A stretch of DNA of 64,000 nt from Amoeboaphelidium protococcarum X5 (taxonomy: Eukaryota; Fungi; Aphelidiomycota). The DNA lies in assembly GCA_023515725.1 (NCBI GenBank), contig JALDTO010000057.1:248001-312000 (forward strand), written 5' to 3'. The notes below the pieces were generated by a model. It ran no database searches, had not been told where the DNA came from, and worked only from the letters and a program-made list of their open reading frames with translations. Below are positions 1-62,156 of this stretch, piece after piece (position 1 is the first letter of the stretch; each line of letters starts with the position of its first letter). The translations under genes were made by a program, and so were the position numbers.

Positions 1-323
1 TTTTTTTGCTTATATATTGATAATCTCTTCAACTTATCCATGATCTTAGTACTTGCACACTCTGCTTAACTTTCAAAGTTTATAGTACCGGTATGACGCA
101 GTTAATTTGTATGATCACATGTGAACACAATGCCAGTCACGATACCTGTGACATGCGATTTCATTGGCTGAACACAAGATTACGCCCAGCCATCCACTAC
201 CGTCTGCCAAGTACAATTATTTATCATCCATCCATTACGTATATATATATATATATTCCCTTTTCTTAATTTAATCAGTACATTCTTGATTATAGTCTAT
301 TTAGTGATACCTGTTTTGTTAAA

Positions 324-1511
324 ATGATCATTGTTTCATAGTTCTAATTGTATATTGTCGCGTCAATGGTCATATTTGGCAGTGATGTTTATGCCCAAGA
401 CGGTGCTGCACAACTTCCCCGTGCTGAAGATTTCCAACCTACTGCTAATCCTCAAGTGCCAGTAGCGGTGTCGGATATTTAGCCAGCTCCTGATGCTGAA
501 ACTAGTGCTCAGCCTGCTGCACCGGCACCTGATACTGATTCCGCATCGTCTCAACCTGCTGACACATAGTCTTCGCGTCCTCAACTTCCACGTGCTGAAG
601 ATTTCTAACCTGCGGCTAATCCACCAATATCATAGTAACCTGACTCTGGTACGACTGTAGGTCAGACTGCTTCCTCTCAATAAGGTTCAGCTCAGGGACC
701 ATAGCGTCCCTAATATCCTAGCGGTCCAGAATATTTTGGCTAGCCCGCTGTCCCTGCTGCATAGTAGTAACCTGACTCTGGTACAGTTGCGGGTCAATCT
801 GTTTCTCCTTAGCAAGGTTCTTCTTCAGGACCACCACGTGCATAGTATCCTGGTGGAGCAGAACTCTTTGGTTAGCCCGCTGTCCCTGCTGTATAGCCTG
901 ATTCTGGTACAGCTGCGGGTCAATCTGTTTCTCCTTCATAAGCTTCTTCTTCAGGACCACCACGTGCATAGTATCCTGGTGGAGCAGAACTCTTTGGTTA
1001 GCCCGCTGTCCCTGCTGTATAACAGTAATCTGATACTGGTACAACTGCGGGCTAATCTGTTTCTTCACAGCAAGGTTCCTCTTCAGGGCCACCGCGTTCA
1101 TAATATCCTGGTGGAGCAGAACTCTTTGGTTCCGCGGGCCCTCCTGGCTCTCGCGCAACACCATCGGCACCTTAAGGTACAGCTGCAGGAAAATCTGTAT
1201 AGGGAAGCAAGCCAGCTACGTAATCATAGATGAGCTAGGCTTCTTAATCAGATAAGAAATCAAGCACCCCTACGAAAGGAACTGCCACTGCCTAAAATAA
1301 GTAGGCCGACTCTGCGAAGTCAAAGACTACCAGCGCGCCATCTAGCAAGAAAAGTGGACCTGGGAAATCCCAATCAACTGGGACCGCCGCGTCGAAATCT
1401 TCTGGTAGTAAACCGGGTGGAAGCGCTGGTTCCAAATCCTCTGGGAAGTCTTCATCCTTGGGAAAACGTGGTCTGTCTGGTAGAAGTATAGCTGGACGCA
1501 TATGGATTTGA
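324..1511 (+). CDS. Secreted Pro/Gln/Ser/Gly-rich repeat protein (395 aa)
   Basis: ATG324 to TGA1511 open with TAR=Gln; hydrophobic N-terminus (MIIVSQFQLYIVASMVIFGSDVYA); about four ~40-aa repeats (PDSGT.AGQSVS..Q.SSSGPPRAQYPGGAELFGQPAVPA); Lys/Ser-rich tail. Confidence 0.8.
636..1135 (+). repeat. Coding tandem repeat, ~120-130 bp units, about four copies
   Basis: CCTGACTCTGGTAC-like and TATCCTGGTGGAGCAGAACTCTTTGGTT blocks recur. Confidence 0.85.
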
Positions 1512-1922
1512 ATTTCAGGTCCTTATTAAAGATGCCTGTCTATGATGATTGCCAAAAGTCGCTGTTCCATCGTAAATGTAAGTTGCTGCTTCAACTCCGA
1601 AACTTGGTCTTTCCGCAATTGTGGCCTCTCATAGTAAGTGCTGATAATTTGGGTTATTTTAGGAGTTGAACTCTAACTTTCTCCGTGATATCCGTCTAAC
1701 ATCTCGCCTTGATAACGCTTTGGTTAGTTTGCATTGCCCAGCTTTAAGGTGGACTTTTTCGGTTGCTGTTGCAGATGGCATTCGGCAATGTCGATTGATG
1801 ATGATACCTGTTACTAAAATTTAAAAAATGTAATTATTATAATTGGTTTTTTATTTACAGGCAATAATCATAACGGAATTCATTGAATATGCCAGAAAGC
1901 AAGCTTTACTTTACTCTAGGGT

Positions 1923-4900
1923 TCATCCTAATTTCAGTGAACGTATACGATGCTGCTCTTATCGCAGCTTGGCATTGGCCTGCAACAACTCATGACTTGT
2001 CAACTGCTACGAAAACCCACGAATCAAATCAGAATAGTCTTTCAGCTATACTACAACATTTCTGTGAGTTTCCATAGTTCGCTTCAGCAAACGATCATTC
2101 TGCAGCAAATCTTAATCAATGGAAAAAGACTTGATATTGCGAGGTGGAGCTCTAAAGTACAGCTTGAGCTCATTCTTGGGAAACCAGCTTGACATTGACT
2201 CTTGATCGACAACGGACTTGAAGAGTGAAGTCTTTTTGACATTAAGTTTATAGAGAGAATCTTCTATCGTGCCAAAAGTGTACAGCCGATAAACATACAC
2301 ATTCTTCTTTTGTCCAAAGCGGTAAGCTCTAGCAATTGCCTATTGATCTAGAGTAGGATTCCAGCCAGCGTCAAAGATAATTACACGATTAGCAGATTAT
2401 AGATTAACACCAACACCACCAGCGGAAATTGAGATAAGAAACACGTCAATCTCGGAATCTCGGTTGAATTTATCAATAAGGGATTGACGCTGAGCAGTGG
2501 GAACCTTACCATCTAAGCGGAGGTATGAGATTCCGCTACCTCTAAAATTCTCCACTTGCTTAATCTTCTGTTCAACCATGTCAAGTGTGGGAATACTTCT
2601 TGAGAAGAGCAATACTTTATCACCAACCCGCCTAGCTTCTTTGATGATCTAAAACGCAATCTAAAACTTGTGACTGTTGGCAATATTCACAATATTTGGA
2701 ATCGCTTTTACCTCCTCATGGAAGGACTTTAGACCAGGTTCATCTTACTTCTTAGTGAACTAACTTTACAATAGAATACTTTCATAATCGTCATCCTCTT
2801 CAAAGTCCTGATCCAAATCTACAACTGTTTTGACGTGCTCTGAGGCAAAAGCTGGTCCAGAAAACAATTTCTACCGGGATGCTAAAGCTGCGACAGAGCC
2901 GGAAATTTCTTCATCATTATCATCGCCGTCTGTATGCTCGATTGATAGAGCGGCATTCGAAATCTACTGCAATGTTGAGGACATCTACTTCTTCTCATTC
3001 TATATTATCAAATTGTAACTACACGCTGGATGATTGACTAGTCGAAGCAATTCCTAGTAATGAGTTAGAATATCAACTCTACTGACTTGTAGTAATTAGC
3101 TATTAGACTACTTGTTAACATGAGCGGAACCATCATGGTTTAGCTACAAAGCATAGTCAAGTTCATCACATTCGGTGGTATTGAGAGGCTCATCACTTTC
3201 AACAAAATGGCCGCAGCATTTCAAGTATTCTTCATACAAATGCTACTGAACAGGAGTCAATTGTACAGCGATGGAGAACTCAAACTTTCTTGTATGCAAT
3301 AAATCTGCCAAATCCACAAGATCATTATTATTATTAGCTTCTTGCATTAACGCGTCAAAATCTTTAATACACAGCCGATGAACCAGAGGCTATAGCAGCT
3401 TTTAAAGTACATACAAACTCTGGCGACAAATACTCTTCTAAACAGGAGTAGAATCCATTGACAAACCATCCGTGATAGGATGCATGAATGCAAGTCTGAA
3501 ATCTTACAGAGTGCCCAAGTATCCAGGATACACAGAGTCAACCATAACGTAGTACTCCAGCAGATTATTCTACAAAGGCGATCCCGTAAGACAAATCTTG
3601 TACTGACATTAAACACGCCTCAGTATAACGTTAACTTTACTCTAATGATTCTTTAATCGATGAGCTTCATCCACAACAATAAGATGCGGACCACGATTGA
3701 GGAATATATCTTGCACCACGGCATCATTGATGAACAATTAACGAAACATCTCAAAGCCCATCAGGAGCAATCCACCGCCTTGTGACCACTGTCTAACTTT
3801 ATCTCGTCTCTCATGAACGTTCGCATACAGCCTGATATGAATAATGGAATCATTGAATACGGATTGAATATCTCTGCGCGGTATCCATCGGTAAATCTCT
3901 TGAATCCAATTTTCTATCAAAGTGGCAGGCATTAGAATAAGTATTTTCAAAGTGCCCTATCCCTGCCGCCGAAGTACTGACGGCAACAATTCAGGCTACT
4001 ACTGGGCGGTTTAACAAAGTATATGCATCAGAAGAATGACCTGGAACGTCTTCATAAGTCCCATACTATGAGCAAGCACACATCCATGACCATTTTACAA
4101 GTTTTACCACATGAATTGCACACCCTCCACCTGATGTTTCTTTACTTTCTCATAACAAAATATAGGCAAATATACACCTTCTGCCAGTTTAAAACCTTCC
4201 GCATTAAAATTAATTTTATTTACTGCTACTTCAGTACTTATATCAAAAGGCAAAATATCTCTATTCATCCAATCCTAATCCATATCATCAATATATTCAC
4301 GTCTCCGCTTTACTCTCAACTCGGACTCCCATTCTTGTTAATTCACAATCTCAACTTCATCTTAATCTATGCTCACTTGACCTGGAAGCTCTATAGTCTA
4401 AGAACTTCTTTTCACGTTATATGCGCGCGACTTTGATTAAGATGAAAATTATCGTTATTGTGTATCATCATGACTAGTTGATCTATCAGCATCAAACTGC
4501 ACCATATCAAACGCGTCATTCATCTACACATTAAATACAGCCTGGTATGATAACTCATCATCTTCAGATAATCCATTGATACTATTCCTCTCATACTATG
4601 ATGATTAGGATGTCATTTATTAGAATATAGGATCCAATGCAATCTATAATAGGGATTCTCTGCCACATTTAATGATAAACATCAACAGTGCTTATTGCAA
4701 ACTTGTCAATGCAACATTCAGGCTCTTTTAGCAATATTACGCGTACAATAAGACTTTCTACAGCAAAAATAGAACACCAACCTCATTGTCTTATTTATGA
4801 AAGTCTTGACTGGGCGAGGACACACTCTATATCAATAGATTAAGCAACTGCTGAAAACAATCAAATGATGGCATTAGAGCTTTAAAATGCCCAGATATGT

Positions 4901-5162
4901 ACAAAGTGAATTAATCAGAATTGCATGATGAGATATTCCGCATTACACCATACAATATATCAGCATCTTCAATAGTCTTGCCAATACGCTCCATCACTGA
5001 CATTACTTAATCCCCAAATTGATAGATGTTTGAGCGTTTTTCTGCACTTGGCTTTCTTATTATTATTACTGCAGCAACAAGAGACGCGTGTTGCGAGCTC
5101 TCCCTGATCGACTTAACGGGATTTGATTCGACATGTTTCATCACACTGGTGGAAACGCACAT
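1923..5162 (-). CDS. SNF2-family helicase, ATRX/RAD54L2(ARIP4)-like (~1079 aa)
   Basis: One frame with TAR=Gln: HQVEGVQFMW, GCVLAHSMGLMKT, VVDEAH, TGSPLQNN, LRLDG, AGGVGVNL, QAIARAYRFGQ. Start codon uncertain (5162, 5141 or further downstream). Confidence 0.88.
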
Positions 5163-5268
5163 TATAACAACAGTATTACATGCCAAGCAAGATTTACTTG
5201 AAACGGGCTATCAAACAAAATATTCATGAACAAATGCATTAATTTATTTATATAATCAAACTACACTT

Positions 5269-6645
5269 TCAATCAAAGCATTAATTTTGATCCAGCTGGC
5301 AATTACTGATGGACGGAGAGTACTGCGTAGACTCAAAAAACTAATTACTATCAAGTTCCGCAGTCCCCATCAGCTCTTTAGCAATACCAGGAGGCGCCAC
5401 CCTGACCTCTTGGTATATTGGAGACCCATCATTATTGTAATCAATTATAAATCGAGGTACTCCGACGACGCGGCTGCCAGCTGGTTCTTTGGTCAAAGCC
5501 TTCTTCAACTTCACCATGCTAAAATCCAACTTTTTAGCCACTTTTTGCACAGTGTCCAAAAATTTAAATTGGCCCTAATTGAGCGGAGTCTAAACAGCCA
5601 AGGAGTTGGCTGCGGGCTAGCTCCGCGCGGGCTTTCTAAATCTCTTGGCGTCACCAAAGCGGGAGAGAAGGATTACCAGTACTTTCACCAAACTTCTTTG
5701 TACCAAATCTGTGCAGCTAGACGCTGTATAAGCAGAGTGGCCATCAAGGCTATCATAAGGATACGTGAATATTGTATTGCGATCCTTATTCTCCACAAAC
5801 ACTTTAAATTGAGATGGGGTAGCAAGCAGAATTGGAGCATTAAGGGAGTACATGGTAGCAAGGACTTGAGCGAGTCTTGATTAAGATTACCATAGATGAC
5901 CGTCCGGATAACTGGTGCAAGTCTTCAATTCAGTACCGAAATATATGGGAGATGATGGGAGATTACTGCGACCTTTGGTCAAATACACGTCCATTTTAGA
6001 GCAATAATCGTATGAATGATCGCACATAACTCCGCCGATAACAACAGACTTTTCATTAGATGTAGCAGTTGGCACCTTCAATATGGAGCCTAGAACCTAC
6101 ACCAATTACACCAAATTAGAGCTGAACGACGATTCATTTAAATCAATGGACAAGTTCTCTAATTTTAACTACACCTCAGCATCAACTTCACAATACGCTG
6201 CCGCGGCCTTCCATCTCTTTTCGACTCCCAGAAATTCGGCCAGTTGATCCAGACCATCCTCACAGTGTCCAAGAGACTAAATCGATCTGTATATAGAAGG
6301 GTGGAAAAGAGTATGTGTCAGTTTCGAAGCTCCAGGCCTTTTGATAAGTTTCACCGTGTCATGAGTCGATTCGCCAATGCCATTGGGGCGCACTTCTATC
6401 ATGCAATTGGCACTTGACACAAATTAGAGGAATTCCAATTGTCTTTGAGCTTAGACTTAGGATAAAGGAAGAAGGAGCGACTATCTTTCTAGCTCCTCAG
6501 CCTCTAAATAGCGGCTAGTAATGGAGGATTAATCAGTATAATCAGAGTCGTCCATCTGCTAATCGCGACCATACACGCGGACCTTTATATCTTGGCTCTC
6601 TCCGACACTAGCAAATAAGTCGTTGAAAACGGGATGTATAATCAT
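5269..6645 (-). CDS. Hypothetical protein (458 aa), possible PD-(D/E)xK nuclease-like fold
   Basis: Open ATG to TGA under TAR=Gln; KMDVYL...GTELKT...RLAQVLATMY pattern. Function is speculative. Confidence 0.65.
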
Positions 6646-7150
6646 ATTTAGATGCAGAAAATTCTAAAATTGAATTTGTAGACAATGTGCTTCTTCCTGT
6701 CAACGGCTAGACTAAAATTCTGTCAATGACTAAACTGTTCTGGCTGGAACAAAGACGGCTGAAGTTCGGTTGTCAAATACAGCCGACCGTGGAAAAATGG
6801 GCGGATCCATCATTCGTGCACCAAGTCCTTTTGAAATTTTTTATCCATTAAGTATTTGTATGATAGTTAGTCTTATTTTAAATACGATTATCAATGAGAT
6901 TCTATATATTTTTACATACTCTTCAATACAAGTCAATAATCTAATTACTCGTTTACTTTATTGCCAATCTTCTGAGCTTGTCTCAATACCTTAAAAATAC
7001 CAATTACTCTTGAGTGATTTTAGGCTTCGACCATCCTCATTGATATCACAATGAAAGGATGACTGGTCATGTCACATCTCATCATTGCATTGTATTCAAT
7101 GCTTACTGACAGTATTCTAATTCTTTCATCGCAATACTGATCATTTGAAA

Positions 7151-7786
7151 ATGTAGCCAAGCCAAAAACGTGAATTATCTGCGGCTGCAAAGACAGCACT
7201 AGAAGATTTCAAAACTTAAGCATATCATCAAGATATTCCCGGCTTTCTCTCCGTGTGTGCTAAGGTGATCAATGAAGTTGATATTCGGATAGTCAAAGAA
7301 CTTGGCGCATCATCATTTGCCGCATTTGCTCCAGTATTTGCCCCTTGGTATAATACTAAATCTGAATGGTTTGGACATTATGTTTGGAATGGCAACACAG
7401 ACGCGTTCAATTAACGACTGTTGTTAAAATGCACTGACAAGGACTGGCAAATACCGTAATCTTAATAAACAGAACACTCCTTAACAGCAAAGTTCAATCC
7501 TAATTTGAATCGTAAAGACATGGGACAAAACGTAAGTGAGAGCCAGGAGAAGTAAAGTTTTAGTCAGGTGCAGCATTAAATTGAGAATATCATTGAATCC
7601 AAAATGCGGAATCAGTAGATTGCATCAGATACAGTCTCTCTAATGGCTAAATGGAAATCTAAGCAGTAATAGTCGTCATCTAAGAGTTTGAAGAAGAAGA
7701 AGAAGAAAGTGCTACAGCTTTCGGAATAATCTCTAGTGGCGTTGGAAAACATGAAACCAAAAATCGGCGAGAGATTGCCGAACTGA
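7151..7786 (+). CDS. Element ORF1 (211 aa); possibly the N-terminal part of the Fanzor protein
   Basis: ATG7151 to TGA7786 with TAR=Gln; KKKKKK stretch; overlaps the Fanzor ORF by 136 nt; its sequence is recognisable in the second copy; no serine-recombinase YARVS motif. Confidence 0.65.
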
Positions 7787-9363
7787 ATCAGTATGATCAG
7801 ATACGCTCGATTAATATTCGTATATTCCCTGATAAGAAGTTCATACACAAATTCAATGAATGGCTGGATCTCAAGTTTCAAATGGTCAATTTCATCATTA
7901 ACATTTTGAATGATTCCAGAGATTAAGGAGAAAAGGTGTCAATACAAGCGCTAAGGAACCATGTTGCGCTAAGTTAAGTCAAAGCCAAAAAGTGCCGCGT
8001 GCCTGATGACGACCCAAGATTGCGTTGGATGCGAATGCCATCTACAGTGCAAGATGAGATTATTAATGCGACTCGCACGTATTACTATGCGGCTCATGAG
8101 AAGTATACAAAGGGTGATATCAAAGACTACAACTTTATGCCAAATAGAGATGATGATTAGTTTTAGATGCTCCAGTTTCAAGCGTAAGATGCCCGTGTAG
8201 ATCCAGATAGCAATCGCGTCCGCCTACTGCCTTCATTCCTCAAGAGCTTTGGGAAACTGTATGCCAAAGATCCTCTATTCTAAGAGCCTGGCAAGATTGA
8301 CTACTGGCCCCGTTTCATCAAGTTTGGCTATGGCAGAGGAAGAGAGTTCAAGCTCGTGAAAAGAAGAAATTAGTTCTTTGTGATTGTTTCGTATGATGCC
8401 TCCTGTATATAAGGTCCATTCACTGATTGGTATTACTAGCAACTGAAAGATATGAATAATGCAGATGAGAATCTTGAAGGTGCTAGATCATTTATAAGCC
8501 GCCGTGATGCGCGTTGCCGTTAAACTGGAAACACTTGCTCGGTGGATCCAGGTGTTAGAGTGAGCATGACCGTCTTCGATTTGGATCGCAGGTCATTCAT
8601 TGCGATTGCGCCTGATTTCAAGTAGCTTTATAAGAATAAGAGTGAATAGATTTCCAATGCATAGTCTCTGAAAGATTAGATGGATAATCGCGCAGCTGCT
8701 TTACAGAATGGACAATTGAGTCTGGAGGAGTTTAAAGCGTAGAAGAAAGAATTATGGCACACATGGAAGTAATCAAAGAATAATGTTGTTCCCACTGATA
8801 TTGGCATTAGTCGTGCTTACACCAAATTCTCTGCATATGTATCGAATTTGCATAACCGAATTGGCAACTTTTTGATGCGGCATTATGATCTAATCATTCT
8901 TCCCGAGTTTCTGACTATTAAGATGGTGAAGAAACGGAGAAAGCGTTTGAATCTACCTCCCGTTCTAAGTGATACGGCCGATGTACTGGTAACACACTCG
9001 CGTGGTTAATAAAATTCTGGGCATCTTCTCCATAAAAATACGCGGAAGACTCTATTGGCGTTTAGCCATTACAAGTGTCGTATGAAACTTATTGCAATGG
9101 CATAAGCTAATATATTTAGATCTGGAAAGTAAGTGCTCGTGACAACGGAGGAGTTTACGTCGAAACAACATCCGTTTCAGAATGTGCTACATAACTGTCT
9201 TGGTGCTGATGAGTACTTCATGTTGGGTGATTTTCGTGCATATCGGGATAATGTTGGATCATATAATGTTATGTCTCGAAGTTTTTCTAAGGAAGAAGTG
9301 AAATTGGTTACTGCGAACTAAGCGGATTAGACACTATACAAGGAGTTCGTGATGTCCATATGA
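7651..9363 (+). CDS. Fanzor2 / TnpB-like RNA-guided endonuclease (570 aa)
   Basis: IRSINIRIFP (TnpB N-terminus), CSVDPGVR (RuvC-I), HNRIGNFLMRHYDLIILPEF, TRKTLLAFSHYKCRMKL, VTTEEFTSK (shifted Glu), YRDNVGSYNV (RuvC-III); more than 20 in-frame TAR, no internal TGA. Confidence 0.9.
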
Positions 9364-9467
9364 AGGTCTTGCAAGAGACTCTATTGCGCCTTGCTTAACA
9401 TCTGATCACTAAATCATAGAAGTGTTTTGTAATTGCTTATCGTTATGCTCGTACTATACTGTTACTC

Positions 9468-9575
9468 TGCTATTAAGGGGCTATGTGGGGACCCCAATGA
9501 AAAGATTGCTGGAGCTTTTTTAAAGTGTACCAATGATCGATTAACCCACATGGGGGCATAATAAATGGGAAAATT
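9468..9575 (+). ncRNA. Candidate omega-RNA 3' scaffold plus guide
   Basis: Most conserved block between the two copies; ATGTGGG/CCCACAT stem; CAAT-GAAAAG-ATTG hairpin with a compensatory change in copy 2. The 5' end is unknown. Confidence 0.65.
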
Positions 9576-25200: not shown

Positions 25201-25465
25201 AAATATATTCCGTCAGACTCGGAGATTTCATCCGCACTAGTGGTGCAAGTGTATTTCGCTTTAGCTCAGTTGGGAGAGCGTTAGACTGAAGATCTAAAGG
25301 TCCTGTGTTCGATCCACAGAAGCGACACATACTTTTTGGTGGTCAATGATATTATTACATTGTATGGAACTAGTTACGATTCAAGCGGGAAGATACGAAC
25401 TTTATTACTTGAATCGAGTCGCGTGGGAGACCAGAATGTCATATACGTTGCATCTACACGTCAGT
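25201..25465 (+). repeat. ~265-bp tRNA-Phe cassette, copy A
   Basis: About 55 bp of 5' flank and 140 bp of 3' flank are highly similar to the reverse complement of 43999-44262. Confidence 0.88.
25255..25327 (+). tRNA. tRNA-Phe(GAA), U1xC72 mismatch
   Basis: Cloverleaf: TAGCTCAGTTGGGAGAGC D-arm, TTAGA-CTGAAGA-TCTAA anticodon arm, CTGTG-TTCGATC-CACAG T-arm; TTTTT terminator just downstream. Confidence 0.92.
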
Positions 25466-41128: not shown

Positions 41129-42331
41129 GAAAAAATGGGGCCGATCTCTCCTGTTCGTGCACTTACAATTTTTTTGCAAATTTTATTTCTTGGTTCACTA
41201 GATGATGGTCAGCTTGTTTCACAAGTATTGTGATATGACATTTAGCGTTACAGTATATATATGGTTCCCATTGAAACTGATCCTAAATCGAAATAATCTC
41301 TCTGAACCCGTGTCTTTCCCTTAACTGATAACTCATCTTGATTGATTTTTGCGCTGCTAAGTATCATCGTTGAAGTCGCACTAATTGATGACTTGTCGCG
41401 TCACTTTATTGTTACTGATATTTTTCTATTCTACACTCGTAGCACTTATTGTCTGATACATCTATCCAAGTCAAGTCAAAGAACGCGAGCTATTTGTTCC
41501 TGCCAAGTAAAGATTCTAGACGAGAACGTTTCATCATGATATCACCGATTGCTGTCCGTGTGTGCCGAGTTAATCAGAAACTCGGATATCAAGATATGTG
41601 ACGCATGATGATGTGGTCTGATACGATGGTGTTAATGATAGAAACATTCCTGTTAAAATGATGCAAGTTGACGTGTTACTTCTCTTCTTAATAAGAAATT
41701 GCTAGTATTGTGATATTGTTGAATAATAGAAAGTTGCATTTACGTCTTTAGGTTCGCCTCTAATGAAACTGTTGCAGTCTTGGCGCTAGTCATTTCATAT
41801 ATTATTGCGATAATGTCAGAGCTTGCATTGTTATGTCACGGAGTTTAAGGGAGAAGTAACATTGGTTGTAGTTGACTTGGCGGAGTAGACTTTTTGCATG
41901 AAATGAATGATGTCTATGTGCATATCTTGCTGAAATACTATCACGCTATATTCAATGGTTGGTCGCTGTATTAAGAAGTATTTCGTTTGCTAATCATTGT
42001 TGTTGCATCATAATGTGATTATCTTTGCGTCTGATTAAATTGGGTTAATGGTAGGCGGCTGCCGCCTAGAGTACTGGTATGGAGGCGCTCTTTGGTGCTG
42101 CAGATGTTGAAGGGCTTATGCGATGAGTTTTAAGCATGGTGCCAGGCTAAATTGGTCAAGATTAAGGTGATGGTGTCCAGTTGTTTTGTCAGGTTGAGTT
42201 TTTGGGCTTTGTAAAATCGTTGAGACAATTCGAAGATTGCAGTCGCTACTACGGGGATATGTGGGGACCCCGATGAAAAGATCGCCGGAGCTTTTTTAAA
42301 AGTGTACGAGTGATCGTTGAACCCACATGGG
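41129..42331 (+). mobile_element. Degenerate, internally deleted copy of the Fanzor element
   Basis: Collinear similarity to about 6792-7470 and 9230-9554; about 1.7 kb including most of RuvC is missing; coding remnants are disrupted; right end is highly conserved. Confidence 0.82.
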
Positions 42332-43998: not shown

Positions 43999-44262
43999 GC
44001 TGACGTGTATATGTAACGACATGACGTTCTGATCGCCCACTGGACTCGATTCAAGTAATAAAGTTCGTATCTTCCCGCTTGTATCGTAACTAGTTCCATA
44101 CAATGTAATAATATCATTGACCACCAAAAAGTATGTGTCGCTTCTGTGGATCGAACACAGGACCTTTAGATCTTCAGTCTAACGCTCTCCCAACTGAGCT
44201 AAAGCGAAATACACTTGCACCACTAGTGCGGATGGAGTCCTCGAGTCTGACGGAATATATTA
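43999..44262 (-). repeat. tRNA-Phe cassette, copy B
   Basis: Reverse-complement match to 25201-25465. Confidence 0.88.
44136..44208 (-). tRNA. tRNA-Phe(GAA), identical to 25255-25327
   Basis: Same cloverleaf and same U1xC72 mismatch. Confidence 0.92.
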
Positions 44263-61807: not shown

Positions 61808-62156
61808 TGGAATCTACACTTTTCTACACCGAAAAACTACACCTTTCTACACCTTGACAACACTTCACGAAAACAATGGTTTGATCGTACAAACAATGGA
61901 ATCTACCTACACCTTTCTACACCTTGACAACACTTCACGAAAACAATGGTTTGATCGTACAAACAATGGAATCTACCTACACCTTTCTACACCATGACAA
62001 CACTTCACGAAAACAATGGTTTGATCGTACAAACAATGGAATCTACCTACACCTTTCTACACCAAAAAACTACACCTTTCTACACCTTGACAACACTTCA
62101 CGAAAACAATGGTTTGATCGTACAAACAATGGAATCTACCTACACCTTTCTACACC
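61808..62156. repeat. 70-bp minisatellite, about 4.5 near-identical units
   Basis: Same phase at 61851, 61921 and 61991; a 22-nt sub-repeat insertion precedes the last unit. Confidence 0.95.

Follow-up and report, generated by a model that had tools for sequence, protein, structure and literature searches.

The window analysed here is a stretch of 64,000 nucleotides from Amoeboaphelidium protococcarum X5, a parasite of algae. The question that it raises is whether the frame at 7651-9363, originally predicted to be an apparently intact Fanzor2 nuclease of 570 aa hidden by a code in which TAR is read as glutamine, can encode a working RNA-guided enzyme, and what kind of element carries it. The frame comprises 570 codons followed by a TGA stop, contains no internal TGA, and includes 14 TAA and 10 TAG codons on recount. 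Under the standard code it falls into stop-free pieces (62, 78, and 80 aa), for which nothing was found in Pfam or PDB. The locus is best explained as a frameshifted IS607-derived transposon that has lost tnpA and kept a Fanzor2-lineage gene, and this explanation as a whole, including the mechanism proposed below, is considered likely.

A. protococcarum reads UAR as glutamine (PMC11687900), and TAR accounts for 55% of the glutamine codons in long host frames of the window, compared with 33 of 57 in the Fanzor gene. The reading of TAR as glutamine is borne out by a TAG (residue 513 in the full-length protein) located in a column that is glutamine in 18 of 21 standard-code homologs, and by exchanges between TAR and CAR among copies. 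An IS607-lineage element has thus resided in a TAR=Gln host long enough to adopt its code, and it should be confined to such hosts. The gene is hidden from a six-frame search with table 1, which would miss it, but not from databases: NCBI holds 31 related sequences in one cluster as full-length table-6 translations that are named hypothetical proteins. The closest database proteins are those of A. protococcarum, and KAI3630017.1 (745 aa) is identical to the copy L013. The family is already in NCBI, without the Fanzor name. In the literature searched, no paper was found that joins Fanzor with Amoeboaphelidium; the Saito et al. supplement contains at least two A. occidentale proteins.

The DPG motif and the shifted glutamate, which had been taken as the mark of Fanzor2, are both present; they characterise both Fanzor types (PMC10711439), and the Fanzor2 call therefore depends on profile, fold, and gene context, all of which upheld the proposed Fanzor2/IS607 lineage. 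With the 78-aa piece (8773-9006) as the phmmer query, 30 relatives were retrieved, which belong to aphelids, chytrids, Tilletia, and metagenomes. In an hmmsearch of the homolog profile against PDB chains, the mimivirus Fanzor2 (9B0L) ranked first (E 4e-22), far before Cas12f and Cas12m. The model query for the fold was P0044, the NCBI translation of sister copy L013, which is identical to the window copy at 526 of 533 residues of the shared part. Its AlphaFold2 model (pLDDT 75) again had 9B0L as the best match in Foldseek and VIA-align (Z 16.4, 398 residues, rmsd 5.1, residues 63-725). No Fanzor1 chain occurred among the profile, Foldseek, or VIA-align matches listed, giant-virus transposases came first in a BFVD structure search, and no relative was found in a scan of viral contigs. 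Residues of the model from 63 align to 9B0L from 53, and intact copies are thus predicted to contain the N-terminal domain (RuvC-R, thumb); the N-terminal piece modelled alone was poor (pLDDT 56). TnpB is devoid of this domain; in ApmFz2 it supplies the rest of the RuvC fold and is in contact with the pseudoknot of the RNA (PMC11832414).

Regarding gene context, six relatives have an IS607-type MerR/resolvase TnpA just upstream of, or overlapping, the Fanzor N-terminus, and the window family is placed among TnpA-adjacent relatives in a tree that includes no named Fanzor1 or TnpB references. On the basis of the profile, the modelled fold, the catalytic triad, and this gene context, the protein family is assigned to the Fanzor2 lineage. 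In L049, L041, L040, L047, L048, and L050, tnpA overlaps the Fanzor N-terminus in another frame, in some apparently with an intron, and gene callers fuse or truncate the two genes.

The predicted motifs were located where they had been placed, namely VDPG (Asp 8545), ILPEF (8896), SHY (9064), and RDN (Asp 9247). The position of TEEFTSK was also correct, with glutamates at 9148 and 9151; the catalytic residue is more likely the second than the first, which had been proposed, because of the rule that it stands six residues before the zinc finger. TEEFTSK is aligned with TEEYTTKQC of relatives and NEYLTTKTC of 9B0L, and a proline occupies the canonical glutamate site. The rearranged RuvC centre, with this proline, the shifted glutamate, and a D/E/D triad, was confirmed. 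The triad (D474, E676, and D708) and the D474-P-G motif are unchanged in 23 of 23 copies, and the three residues correspond to D324, E467, and D501 of ApmFz2.

The C4 zinc finger motif, which is situated between TS and RD (PMC3627910), is missing. No CxxC pair is present in P0044, P0042, or P0003, and all four finger cysteines are gone or replaced in aphelid proteins; both aphelid families and the Tilletia relative are finger-less, whereas most other relatives retain the finger. A search of the genome with PF07282 identified 36 other places above the cut-off, and this Fanzor family was not among them because the finger is absent. Those places (e.g., C154:219328, C211:210120, and C264:681866) represent several other zinc-finger Fanzor families in the same genome. 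The second finger-less aphelid family (G000:C179:334139-336325 and L044:3001-5217; KAI3636302.1 and KAI3648567.1) is 49-50% identical and uninterrupted, and the L044 family has its own co-varying ends.

Cleavage is uncertain because the zinc finger has been lost. It is possible, if rather improbable, that the family consists of RNA-guided binders or weak, decaying nucleases in which guide RNA and DNA are still bound and cutting disappeared together with the finger; the replaced cysteines, the blindness of PF07282, and the broken state of 13 of 23 copies all agree with this. Of the other ten copies, 9 read 740-758 codons without interruption and 1 stops about 16 codons early. Against this reading, two aphelid families that are only 50% identical have both retained all of D-E-D, as has the finger-less Tilletia relative, and there is purifying selection between subfamilies. 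The dN/dS ratio was 0.80 within the recent burst and 0.35-0.37 against two older subfamilies, indicating purifying selection over the history of the family while single copies now drift. No CpG or RIP-like mutation bias was detected among copies. Taking the analysis together, intact copies most likely encode a nuclease guided by RNA to cut at the empty site; the family descends from the Fanzor2 lineage and would work in the same way. Because both the zinc finger and an in-element TnpA are missing, the family is filed as a Fanzor2 variant and not as a canonical member.

Such a nuclease would require a guide RNA, and a candidate is encoded at the right end of the element (Table 1). In the predicted scaffold, a stem of 4-5 bp (9477-9480/9492-9495) encloses a loop (9482-9489) that pairs with the last 8 nt (9545-9552). 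The pseudoknot, of 7-9 pairs, is kept via changes on both sides in five families, and its last G always pairs with U, which agrees with the scaffold of IS607 TnpB in that the latter takes in a fixed flanking base (PMC10711439). The same layout, with a length of 77-86 nt, was found after the stop codon in the 50%-identical L044 and in L040, L048, and L049, and probably in L042 and L047; for each, 4-11% of shuffles produce such a layout, and L045, L046, and L050, three further relatives, showed none. In the inner hairpin (~9504-9538), four pairs are changed on both sides, all from L044, and folding is strong in L044 (z -4.5), intermediate in the short family (z -2.8), and weak in the window family (z -0.9). 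The whole 3' region did not fold better than shuffles (z +1.1), and an Rfam search was blank.

The same right end also occurs in elements that do not encode a protein. A pattern search detected 42 right ends in the genome, of which 26 belong to the Fanzor family and 16 to a 1.2-kb non-coding family that has a member in the window. Contigs from other runs, taken as a sister strain because they are about 5% diverged, were used to look at this end. No run is recorded as RNA; depth differs between genes, the Fanzor gene is mostly covered at low depth, and judging from this unequal depth the runs look like RNA. Very deep sister-strain contigs lie at the right end, and one extends into the flank of the short-family copy L026, a hint that the ghost loci are expressed. 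Another short-family copy contains a nested 2.1-kb insertion (L022:777-2760).

The ends of the element were defined by 23 full copies with sharp common ends and 93-99% identity, and the genome contains at least 23. Twenty-one of them are related in a star-like pattern, each having about 0.35% private change, as a single recent burst would leave; the other two are 3.6% and 6.2% away. Seven variants within 63 bp of the window copy (6995-7057) are common only to L035, the most divergent copy, and probably mark a gene-conversion tract between copies. Sister-strain contigs carry the empty site, joining 6797 to 9554 with three letters between (6798-9553 skipped); this gives a net insertion of 2,753 bp, comprising 6801-9551 and one of the two GGs (6799-6800 and 9552-9553). 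Contig C249 was rejected as an empty site, having a gap of the right length and a paralogous sequence too diverged to align; it also contains a counterpart of window positions 1-5793 at 79-89% identity.

Insertions share a target preference. At two positions in the A-tract to the left of the element, A was found in 26 and 25 of 27 insertions, and the first base beyond the right end is G in 25 of 26, with variable bases from the second onward. Across copies there is little variation in the left GG or in one G on the right, and the second right base varies (G+N in most); the window copy has GG at both termini and, by comparison with the empty site, a GG target without duplication. No target duplication is fixed across copies, and some have one of 2-3 bp; the ATGGG at both junctions was rejected as a target duplication since it holds for the window copy only. 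The right junction is exact, and the left junction varies by 0-3 bp. At the left junction of L018 and L023, a duplicate of right-flank sequence stands in place of the first 7-9 bp and ends at a short match to the start of the element. The subterminal imperfect inverted repeat is weak when the window family is taken alone (9 of 100 shuffles were equally good), and its equivalents are a perfect repeat of 13 bp in the sister family L044 (0 of 100 shuffles) and an imperfect repeat of 28 bp in L047.

In IS607 elements the arms of an imperfect inverted repeat lie unequally far from the two ends, the termini are G(G), and no duplication is fixed (PMC6188088); the ends of the family fit this description. 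The three departures are the right junction of G plus any base, the 2-3-bp duplication in some copies, and the left A-run; a preference for A-tracts is unreported for IS607 (PMC6188088). TnpA is missing from the elements of the aphelid, Tilletia, and L042, and four queries did not find it in this element, in short-family copies, or elsewhere in the assembly, using a first-pass filter that may miss split or divergent genes. The TnpA-bearing relative L047 has BTB, NADAR, KilA-N, and F-box genes around it, which gives it surroundings like those in giant viruses. The absence of TnpA from all genome searches, the combination of an exact right junction with a left one that varies and in two copies holds 7-9 bp of target, and the strong A-tract preference would all suit an element now moved by a non-IS607 transposase through a Fanzor2*-like capture, for instance by an HUH or Helitron2-type enzyme. 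This is unlikely, given that the end structure is that of IS607 and that TnpA-bearing relatives have the same G-closed pseudoknot at the end. The family would instead depend on mobilisation in trans, through a serine recombinase of IS607 type that has been lost, is absent from the assembly, or has diverged too far to be recognised.

The window copy itself differs from intact copies by a frameshift. A segment of 16 bp at 7758 is carried by 20 of 23 copies and is also present in an independent sequencing run, but it is missing in the window copy, L002, and L003. With the 16 bp restored, a single frame runs from an ATG at 7151 to 9363. The 570-aa protein proposed initially is thus superseded by one of about 745 aa in intact copies, which starts at 7151 in another frame, and codons 1-36 of the frame 7651-9363 are an off-frame reading of the poly-Lys linker. 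In the window copy the true frame from 7151 stops at 7784-7786 after 211 aa; its product matches residues 1-~205 of the 743-aa P0042, aligns to the N-terminal domain of 9B0L, and includes residues invariant among relatives (A60, P61, F63, W66, and S71). This part was rejected as a separate upstream partner gene because it is the Fanzor N-terminus. Judged from the reading frames, the window copy has thus been deprived of ~200 N-terminal residues, and the ATG that follows in frame (7882) is already beyond the first WED strand. The three copies without the 16 bp have no other private variant in common, and the deletion may have arisen repeatedly, spread by conversion, or resulted from assembly error. 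It is very unlikely that the window copy is functional, either because the deletion, which falls in the low-confidence linker of the model, is an assembly or polishing error, or because it is bypassed by a cryptic 44-nt GT..AG intron (7666-7709) that would restore the frame or by a start at ATG 7651: slippage typically produces deletions such as this one between 10-bp repeats, the frame is likewise restored by 56 chance GT..AG pairs and no splice joint was seen in the sister-strain contigs examined, a start at 7651 would forgo the domain that in ApmFz2 completes RuvC and binds the pseudoknot (PMC11832414), and NCBI annotates two genes in the equivalent copy L002, one of 214 aa and another downstream of it. 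The window copy, which had been described as apparently intact, therefore probably makes no working nuclease, and it could still supply guide RNA.

Neighbouring genes, including a cullin and a helicase-C-domain gene, indicate a eukaryotic host genome context. The element lies about 150 bp upstream of the ATG of a host gene on the reverse strand (5269-6699, about 458 aa), two pieces of which gave no Pfam match. The insertion may sit in the 5' leader or promoter of this gene because one sister-strain contig covers both the empty site and the 5' part of the gene. Other features of the window are near-perfect tandem repeats of 70 bp and 93 bp (61837-62156), a coding tandem repeat of 126-132 bp (632-1131), and two tRNA-Phe(GAA) genes (25255-25328 and 44135-44208).

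Table 1. Positions of the transposon, its gene, its predicted RNA, and a related element in the window.
Feature	Position	Strand	Remarks
Whole element	6799..9553	+	2,753 bp net; includes GG at each junction; interior 6801-9551; ends common to 23 copies
Host-side target motif (A-run, 1-2 variable bases, G)	6793..6800	+	Predicted TAM side
Left subterminal imperfect inverted repeat	6804..6821	+	Partner 9525-9542
5' gene part	7151..7786	+	N-terminal helices, APVFAPW, poly-Lys linker; early TGA after deletion
16-bp deletion site, frameshift	7758..7759	+	Between two 10-bp direct repeats
3' gene part	7759..9363	+	WED, REC, RuvC; D 8545, E 9151, D 9247; zinc-finger cysteines gone, ~9166-9240
Predicted omega-RNA scaffold core, 76 nt	9477..9552	+	Pseudoknot and inner hairpin, by comparison
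Predicted guide	9553..9572	+	Host flank, different in each copy; proposed from IS607 TnpB (PMC10711439)
1.2-kb non-coding element	41138..42330	+	Ghost or non-autonomous partner; ends and RNA scaffold as in the Fanzor element; genome has 16 such right ends

The proposed mechanism concerns intact copies. These would produce a protein of ~745 aa with TAA and TAG read as glutamine, and the protein would bind the right-end RNA, in which the 76-nt pseudoknotted scaffold, including the fixed G, leads into host flank that serves as the guide. The complex would then cut the empty allele beside a G-ending motif, and repair from the filled copy would restore the element, a form of homing. Cutting of the empty site in a way that favours element restoration is established for TnpB. 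A fuller picture combines an active finger-less Fanzor2 nuclease in intact copies, a scaffold of ~76 nt, an A-rich, G-ending motif, guides supplied in trans from highly expressed ghosts, and spread without a recognisable IS607 recombinase; as a complete set this is a tentative proposal with a rather low chance of being correct. Fanzor2 enzymes are under development as editors; in the one with a solved structure, a zinc finger is present and the scaffold is ~200 nt long. With nine natural alleles that are uninterrupted, a 76-nt scaffold backed by covariation, and a target motif drawn from 27 insertions, the family is suited to a direct test of the need for the zinc finger, for which the window copy is unsuited. 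Uninterrupted copies include KAI3632007.1, KAI3636195.1, and L004 on C244, and KAI3630017.1 has more private changes than these.

Among known systems, ApmFz2 of Acanthamoeba polyphaga mimivirus (9B0L; PMC11832414) is the best match in profile and fold. Both proteins have the order of N-terminal domain, WED, REC, and RuvC, the DPG motif, the proline at the canonical glutamate site, the shifted glutamate, and the RD of the triad, and both systems have a 3'-terminal RNA pseudoknot and a G-ending target. On the other hand, the aphelid protein is longer (745 versus 520 aa), is only 14-16% identical, and has no C4 zinc finger, and its element is without tnpA and uses the TAR=Gln code. The pseudoknot partner is situated ~70 nt from the end in the aphelid and ~190 nt in ApmFz2, so the aphelid scaffold core is predicted to be much smaller. 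The IS607 family (IS607, IS1535, ISC1926, and ISXfa1; PMC6188088, PMC10711439) shares the unequal imperfect inverted repeat, the lack of a fixed duplication, a crossover at G, and an RNA scaffold that takes in the fixed flanking G. It differs in that aphelid TnpA was found in neither element nor genome, the aphelid left junction is variable, and the aphelid target needs one G instead of GG, with an upstream A-tract.

SpuFz1 of Spizellomyces punctatus (PMC10432273) is likewise a transposase-less multicopy Fanzor with non-coding ghosts that share the right-end RNA and a scaffold of ~75-90 nt, but it has a Fanzor1 fold, true terminal inverted repeats, and no pseudoknot. Membership of Fanzor1 is not supported for the aphelid family, which gave no Fanzor1 match in the profile and fold searches, has no fixed target-site duplication, and has a predicted pseudoknot. 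The remaining comparison is with the uncharacterised long Fanzor2 clade of fungi and metagenomes (Borealophlyctis KAJ3300409.1, Tilletia CAD6944024.1, and soil L040, L049, and L050). Most of its members keep the zinc finger and an overlapping tnpA, whereas the aphelid and Tilletia members are without both. The aphelid protein is 24-29% identical to these relatives over the full length, carries the same insertions, and forms one clade (99/99) with them, apart from the short Fanzor2-like proteins; several members have pseudoknotted right ends of 77-86 nt.
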